A stretch of 5,659 nt of DNA from Paraphysomonas bandaiensis (Eukaryota; Protista; Chrysophyceae): assembly GCA_965644295.1 (NCBI GenBank), contig CBFFRP010000528.1, positions 1 through 5,659 on the forward strand, in the 5' to 3' direction. The notes beneath the pieces were generated by a model, which saw only the letters and a program-made list of their open reading frames with translations, was not told where the DNA came from and did not search any database. Position numbers and translations under genes: made by a program. Within the stretch, counting starts at the first letter, position 1. Each line of letters opens with the position of its first letter. Below are positions 1,742 through 1,998 of the stretch, one piece after another.

Positions 1742-1753
1742 AAGTATTAATAC
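1742..1753 (-). promoter_or_regulatory. Putative non-tRNA (self-priming) primer-binding site of element A
   Basis: Minus-strand GTATTAATACTT abuts the LTR-terminal CA, lacks TGG, and is complementary to AAGTATGATAC (1984-1974) inside the LTR. Confidence 0.5.
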
Positions 1754-1813
1754 TGTAATCTTTCTGATGAGAAAGACCGTGTTTACAACGTTCTAAGAAT
1801 TTAAAGTGCTTCC

Positions 1814-1878
1814 CAAACCGAGAATACACTGTCCAGAACACCAAACCGGTGAAACTGCCTCCTAACACAAGCAAACCG
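1814..1878. repeat. Degenerate ~29-bp periodic repeat (CAAACCG x3) in LTR A
   Basis: CAAACCG at 1814, 1842 and 1872; units 1 and 2 also share ACTG..TCC..AACAC. Confidence 0.5.
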
Positions 1879-1998
1879 CGAGTATAGAATGAGTTAAATT
1901 ACGTTAAAACGTGTAAAAGAAGAAGTGAAAACATACAACACTCTATCTTGCTGTGAATCATCTACAGTTTACAGTATCATACTTGTACATATACGGGA

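Follow-up and report, generated by a model that had tools for sequence, protein, structure and literature searches.

The priming of reverse transcription is a defining trait of retroelement lineages, and to our knowledge only two modes are understood so far, i.e. priming by a tRNA and self-priming of the Tf1 type. The question raised by the present locus is how an LTR retrotransposon primes when the sequence next to its 5' LTR offers nothing for a tRNA to pair with. The window, i.e. the whole 5.7-kb contig (5,659 nt) of a 62.6-Mb genome, carries on its minus strand, from 2139 to 1, the 5' part of such a retrotransposon, called element A below (Table 1). A first-pass annotation of the locus had proposed that element A self-primes in the manner of Tf1, with the first 11 nt of its own RNA. 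The analysis presented here points to another solution, built around a perfect palindrome which occupies the primer site.

Element A and the position of its LTR end

Element A is a Ty3/gypsy-type (Metaviridae) LTR retrotransposon of 6.7 kb, the length of the full copy L047 (contig C153). The Pol protein of this copy has 1,315-1,324 residues and the protease-RT-RNase H-integrase order of Ty3/gypsy, the match to Peptidase_A3B at its N-terminus being weak. The Gag protein of element A contains a finger of the CX9CX4CX3H form and gave no match against Pfam. Pol is in the same frame as Gag, runs on to window position 1 and is presumably made by stop-codon readthrough, a device that gammaretroviruses and some elements of fission yeasts use between Gag and Pol. 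The arrangement of gag and pol in one frame with a single stop between them was seen in the window (TGA 86-88, minus strand), in L047 (at 2539-2541) and in L055, L057 and L058.

Table 1. Coordinates of the features discussed in the text (window positions, except for the domains of the L047 Pol)
Feature	Position	Strand	Remarks
Gag ORF	86..1696	(-)	539 codons, ATG at 1696, TGA at 88-86 (ORF list)
Leader arm of U5-leader stem	1726..1741	(-)	minimum-energy fold, 125-nt segment
Perfect 12-nt palindrome AGTATTAATACT	1743..1754	(-)	10-nt core 1744-1753; first A is the last LTR base
5' LTR of element A	1754..2139	(-)	386 bp, TGTCAC...GATTACA; ends common to >40 genome copies
U5 arm of U5-leader stem enclosing the palindrome	1756..1776	(-)	minimum-energy fold, 125-nt segment
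Proposed R start/self-primer AAGTATGATAC-TGTAA	1969..1984	(-)	pairs with 1758-1742
TATA-like box GATATAAG	1999..2006	(-)	sequence only; promoter role putative
RVT_1	333-470		L047 Pol, Pfam
RT_RNaseH	541-672		L047 Pol, Pfam
Integrase_H2C2	776-829		L047 Pol, Pfam
SH3_Tf2-1	1066-1106		L047 Pol, Pfam

The end of the LTR matters because it fixes where a primer site has to be sought, and several observations agree on it. Every one of the >40 copies of element A in the genome begins at window position 2139. For the copies made of a 5' LTR and interior sequence the match extends to query position 601, past 1754, and for the 3' or solo LTR copies it ends at query positions 547-553, i.e. at window positions 1754-1748. 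The flanks that follow the 3' copies are unrelated, and the sequence following the 5' copies is always the same. The full copies L047, L048, L051 and L055 have TG...CA LTRs, in identical or near-identical pairs, with a polypurine tract that has GGGTAG as its end ahead of the 3' LTR and, for each of the four, a 4-bp target duplication (ATTT, GAAC, TTCT and AAGG). A contig from another organism's run breaks exactly at 1753 and 2139; over 1450-2250, the contigs of four runs are short, fragmented, high-copy pieces without transcript starts, poly(A) ends or joints. The LTR boundary at 1754, as set by the first-pass annotation, is thus borne out by the genome copies, the 3' LTRs and the target duplications. 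The sequence TGGTGTTCTGG, near 1845, had been named as a possible tRNA primer site under another boundary; it lies inside the LTR and for that reason cannot be one. Directly after ...GATTACA comes GTATTAATACTT, where, as previously noted, there is no TGG. No tRNA gene was detected in the window by ARAGORN.

Two side observations may be added. What the elements L031-L036 (contigs C31, C164, C34, C287, C132 and C298), of 5.05 and 5.57 kb, have in common with element A is limited to the LTR, the palindrome, the leader and, in gag, the first ~230 nt (93-96% identity). Past that point they are divergent, with ORFs that are short (215, 351-407 and 106 aa); probably they represent non-autonomous derivatives in which the cis signals are retained. 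On the plus strand, window positions 2771-4880 carry the integrase gene of a second element, split by a segment (3799-4491) resembling antisense large-subunit rRNA.

A perfect palindrome at the primer site

The first-pass annotation, right about the missing tRNA site, had left unnoticed what stands in its place, i.e. a perfect palindrome (Table 1). This palindrome is unchanged at all 36 LTR-interior junctions of element A in the genome. It adjoins the 5' copy of the LTR only and lies outside the 3' LTR. Each element contains its 10-nt core a single time, and a search of the LTR and of the rest of the element gave no further copy of the palindrome.

The comparison was extended to related families of the same host, which are numerous, with about 10 more Pol lineages in the genome besides those compared here. 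For six of them, both LTRs are available and the LTR ends were independently fixed: A, L051, L055, L056, L057 and L058, the last five with a Pol 36-64% identical to that of A. Three others (L139, L140 and L141) are represented by their 5' region only, and their sites were assigned by motif. In all nine host families examined, a perfect palindrome makes up the 10 nt that follow the LTR: GTATTAATAC in A, GTAATATTAC in L051, L055, L058, L139 and L140, and GTAAATTTAC in L056 and L057, with a 14-mer palindrome in L141. When the last LTR base, an A, and the T that follows are counted in, the host 10-nt palindromes become 12-mers. In the stretch examined of a further locus, L142, there was no clear palindromic site. 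L056 (contig C499) is peculiar in other respects: its LTRs are 1.36 kb long, each with a 174-codon ORF, and no gag-sized ORF is present between the palindrome and Pol.

More distant relatives were found on metagenome contigs (80 relatives, with ~25-65% Pol identity in the best segment, mostly 31-51%). Of the 40 loci with sequence upstream of gag, 36 had a perfect palindrome, 12 nt or longer, within the 400 nt upstream of gag, against 5.6 predicted by shuffles, and so had 64 of 445 control windows of 400 nt taken inside Pol; since palindromes were sought from the centre outwards, interrupted ones would be missed in these counts. The remaining 4 of the 40 loci had a palindrome of 8-10 nt only. 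The metagenome palindromes are mostly preceded by CA or TA, and for most of these contigs the LTR end was itself inferred from position and from the preceding CA or TA. The only metagenome relative with a true LTR pair and flank is L074, in which the palindrome starts within the LTR-terminal CA(A). About 16 different palindrome sequences were collected (e.g. CAATAACGTTATTG, ATTATCGATAAT and ACAATTATAATTGT), in some of which the centre contains C/G; every one of them is perfect through the centre. The pattern CAGTAWWWWTACT occurs 258 times in the genome, versus 79 for the reversed control, and ~73 of the first 100 matches listed have a self-complementary centre (a property of 4 of the 16 possible centres).

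Some of the metagenome loci have features of their own. Contigs L062, L065, L067, L082 and L083, among others, show the same 55-141 nt at both ends, the usual sign that both LTRs were collapsed by the assembler into a circular path, which leaves one LTR each and no direct LTR end. L128 possesses, besides a 16-nt palindrome at the primer-site position, a perfect 32-nt palindrome ~380 nt upstream of gag, in the LTR region.

Judged on sequence, the tRNA primer site is replaced across this clade by a perfect, AT-rich palindrome of 10-16 nt adjoining the 5' LTR, and the clade is a large one, present in the stramenopile host and in many aquatic metagenomes.

A proposed role of the palindrome as both primer site and dimer linkage

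In the standard logic of LTR formation, the end of the LTR is the edge of the primer site. Since the palindrome adjoins the end of the LTR without being part of the 3' LTR, minus-strand synthesis must start at its 5' edge; by this reasoning the palindrome is the operational primer site of element A. Any RNA able to pair perfectly with a palindrome carries the same palindrome, so that the simplest primer would be the corresponding site of a second genomic RNA. A self-complementary centre is needless in a hairpin loop, which favours an intermolecular duplex over a mini-hairpin.

The mechanism that we propose would run as follows. Two packaged genomic RNAs would pair palindrome to palindrome, often atop a U5-leader stem (see below). 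One strand would be cut at the 3' edge of the palindrome duplex, much as RNase H cuts the RNA duplex of Tf1, and the new 3' end would be extended across the U5 and R of the partner RNA. The palindrome would in this way act as dimer linkage and primer site together. tRNA-independent priming through the palindrome, the likeliest route being the pairing of two genomic RNAs, is our preferred reading, the case for which we consider to be evenly balanced. The broader proposal that an aquatic-protist gypsy clade has fused its dimer-linkage and primer-binding sites, and self-primes in trans between two packaged RNAs, is a tentative one, which we lean slightly against accepting as it stands. Some points speak against priming through the palindrome: a long R-U5-palindrome primer leaves the question of how plus-strand strong-stop synthesis stops, and element A possesses a different fold-back duplex, between 1984-1969 and its LTR end, that is nominally better than chance (p ~0.01-0.03; see the next section).

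The palindrome could also serve only in dimerisation, packaging or protein binding, priming being invisible in the sequence (protein-primed, or de novo at a hairpin). Self-complementary sites are indeed the classic dimer-initiation signals of retroviruses, and the role of the palindrome as a primer is deduced from its position. The dimer sites of retroviruses, Ty1 and Ty3, however, coexist with a tRNA site, whereas here the space from the LTR end to the leader contains nothing else; moreover, the position of the primer sets the LTR end, which is exactly the edge of the palindrome. We hold a purely dimerising or packaging role to be unlikely.

The fold-back duplex of element A and the Tf1-type reading

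In the Tf1-type reading, the RNA would start at 1984, a position that is a guess, its first 11 nt would fold in cis onto the primer site, and a cut by RNase H would release an 11-mer acting as primer. The pairing invoked does exist as described: in RNA form, AAGUAUGAUAC-UGUAA (1984-1969) and UUACA-GUAUUAAUACUU (1758-1742) form 15 Watson-Crick pairs and one G:U, with one bulged A. At -14.3 kcal/mol, these 16 pairs make a better duplex with the LTR end and primer site than any other part of the LTR does; 2 of 200 dinucleotide shuffles matched it, and a second run gave p ~0.03. The distance to the TATAAG box (2004-1999), which lies 15-20 nt upstream of 1984, is also as first annotated. In the minimum-energy fold of an RNA begun at 1984, the 5' end pairs with U5 and the primer site; there the central duplex extends by 5 pairs into U5, and no separate third duplex was identified. 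Similar-looking LTR sites are present in L051 and L056 (p ~0.04 each), and the integrase tail is chromodomain-like in its predicted fold, as in chromoviruses (see below).

Set against this, the complement is imperfect, by the G:U and the bulge, and perfect complementarity is needed by Tf1 according to the authors who described the GalEa elements (PMC5445492). The 11-nt 'primer' part is weak by itself, -6.1 kcal/mol versus -11.4 kcal/mol for the homoduplex of the 12-bp palindrome. The reading also leaves unexplained why the site is everywhere a perfect palindrome.

A homologous LTR block, ~215 nt before the LTR end, is common to A, L051, L140 and L055, and is absent from L139. In L051, L140 and L055 it reads GTGTGTGTTAC, then TGTAG, ACTGT or ATAGG, and it ends in GTTAC; the LTR ends of the same three families differ (CTACA, TCACA and TTTCA). 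When the pairing is extended onto the LTR end in the register first proposed, 5 of 5 positions pair in L051, 3 of 5 in L055 and 2 of 5 in L140. The compensatory changes between R start and primer site that conserved pairing calls for are thus missing from the sister families L055 and L140, and L139 has no block to compare. L055, with LTRs 100% identical and intact reading frames, appears to be young and to manage without the pairing. In a set of 27 lineages, the LTR was no more complementary to the LTR end and primer site than shuffled LTRs were (Fisher p 0.33), and none of the LTRs contained the primer site a second time (p ~1). Copies of family A are ~98% identical, with invariant primer site and palindrome, which makes covariation within the family uninformative.

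Given that the pairing of element A is not conserved in its relatives, the Tf1-type reading is not supported: a neat fold-back match in a single element is not sufficient for calling Tf1-type priming. The pairing of 1984-1969 with 1758-1742 is real in the sequence, but chance is its most likely origin; at most it would be an accessory fold confined to the element A family. Element A, as far as its sequence and those of its sisters tell, probably does not prime in the Tf1 manner, and we regard cis priming by the first 11 nt as improbable. The suggestion that it represents a little-described self-priming lineage holds in part: element A has no tRNA-type site and belongs to a little-described protist LTR lineage that very probably primes without tRNA, but the Tf1-like 11-nt mechanism attached to that suggestion is not supported.

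The U5-leader stem around the palindrome

In the minimum-energy fold, the palindrome of element A is enclosed by a stem between U5 and the leader (Table 1). Stem and palindrome together make a 24-nt imperfect palindrome, with 2 mismatches, found at all 36 junctions. Analogous U5-leader stems, the sequence of which differs from family to family, exist in L051, L055 and many relatives, and U5-leader pairing is significant across 28 lineages (Fisher p 3e-5).

The presence of the palindrome at the tip of such a stem in many lineages, and the 24-nt imperfect palindrome itself, would suit a snap-back in cis, in which the RNA is cut 3' of the palindrome, the palindrome forms a mini-hairpin on the same molecule and the 3' end is extended over its own U5-R. 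A hairpin, however, needs an unpaired loop, and in all host families, as in 36 of 40 relatives, self-complementarity includes the central 4 nt; a stem of 3-4 A-U pairs would in addition be weak. The footprint of a snap-back product, i.e. a head-to-head LTR-palindrome-inverted-LTR, was sought by a pattern search of the genome, which gave only the 36 normal junctions. We rate snap-back priming as quite improbable. Priming by an RNA of the host (a tRNA half or fragment, or another small RNA) is very improbable: half-tRNA priming is known in Copia lineages (PMC6317226), but the different palindromes (at least 4 co-resident in this genome, ~16 across relatives) would each need a self-complementary host RNA of its own, a gap-free A/U palindrome of 10-16 nt misfits the arms of the established tRNA structure, and none of the 100 CAGTAWWWWTACT sites listed falls in any of the 63 tRNA genes listed.

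The integrase tail

A chromodomain is one of the traits by which the Tf1/sushi group is defined. Profile searches of Pfam and PDB found no match to a chromodomain in the integrase tail. The model of the tail (L047 5701-6513, the C-terminus of Pol; pLDDT 91.8) consists of three small barrel-type domains, of which the first is an integrase SH3-like barrel; taken as a whole, the tail bears a weak resemblance to the triple Tudor of SETDB1. The middle domain, modelled alone as tail residues 93-175 (pLDDT 81.5), matched mostly chromodomains (cpSRP43, Swi6, Chp1 and CBX), with a target-normalised TM of ~0.4-0.7, an rmsd of ~3 A and weak E-values (0.15-0.6). If these models are a guide, the L047 tail may be a chromatin-reading targeting module, and the palindrome clade may be a divergent branch of the chromoviruses.

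Relation to other systems

The Tf1/sushi group (S. pombe Tf1/Tf2, Tosmo, sushi and plant Tcn1) is defined by the chromodomain, a self-primer located at the RNA's 5' end and a three-duplex 'pretzel' (PMC10085805). Like its members, element A has the Ty3/gypsy domain order and no tRNA site, and its own RNA is the likeliest primer. The cutting of the Tf1 RNA duplex by RNase H, which yields the primer (Levin 1996, as cited in PMC10085805), offers a natural analogy for the cut postulated above. The chromodomain-like predicted fold of the integrase tail may be a further likeness. Another is the in-frame stop between gag and pol, reported for some fission-yeast relatives of the Tf1 group (PMC10085805). 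The sites themselves differ: those of the Tf1 group are complementary to the 5' end of the transcript and, as stated for Tf1 itself (PMC5445492), not palindromic, whereas that of element A is a perfect palindrome, with an LTR complement that is imperfect in element A itself and, in its relatives, either missing or uncompensated.

The closest parallel at the level of the site is the Conserved Hairpin Site of the fungal GalEa Copia elements, a palindrome to which the last A of the LTR belongs, the mechanism of which was left open by its authors (PMC5445492). In both cases the tRNA site gives way to a short conserved sequence immediately next to the 5' LTR, which forms a palindrome once the last LTR A is counted in and has variants that change in a paired way. 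The two nevertheless differ in several respects. GalEa elements are of the Copia type (integrase before RT) whereas element A has the gypsy order; the GalEa site is 10 nt long with a G/C-containing core, whereas those of the element A clade are 10-16 nt long and consist almost entirely of A/T. In GalEa a second complementary box lies 12-41 nt downstream, while the core of element A occurs once, and in the folds of element A the partner of U5 is the leader, and the site does not pair with a copy further downstream. In our literature search for a palindromic primer site, the fungal GalEa report was the sole analogue found, and none was found for gypsy elements.

The HIV-1 DIS, the Ty1 PAL and the tRNA-bridged Ty3 dimer resemble the proposed arrangement in that self-complementary RNA near the primer site links two genomic RNAs; unlike the palindrome of element A, which occupies the primer site, they coexist with a tRNA primer site. 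The dictyostelid Skipper elements, finally, have a polypyrimidine stretch instead of a tRNA site, for which a novel mode of self-priming was proposed (PMC5006619). They too are a protist gypsy lineage of the chromovirus type that has lost the TGG site and lacks an LTR complement, but they have a polypyrimidine tract where the element A clade has a palindrome.

Significance

A palindrome that is always perfect, and that undergoes paired changes down to ~25-30% Pol identity, points to another solution to the priming problem, one which may couple dimerisation to priming. On the practical side, these protist elements are abundant and will be mislabelled by LTR annotation tools that rely on finding a tRNA site or a complement within the LTR. 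If the mechanism proposed here is true, trans self-priming would be a third mode beside tRNA priming and Tf1-type priming from the 5' end, and the different palindromes of co-resident families would then be family-specific pairing codes.
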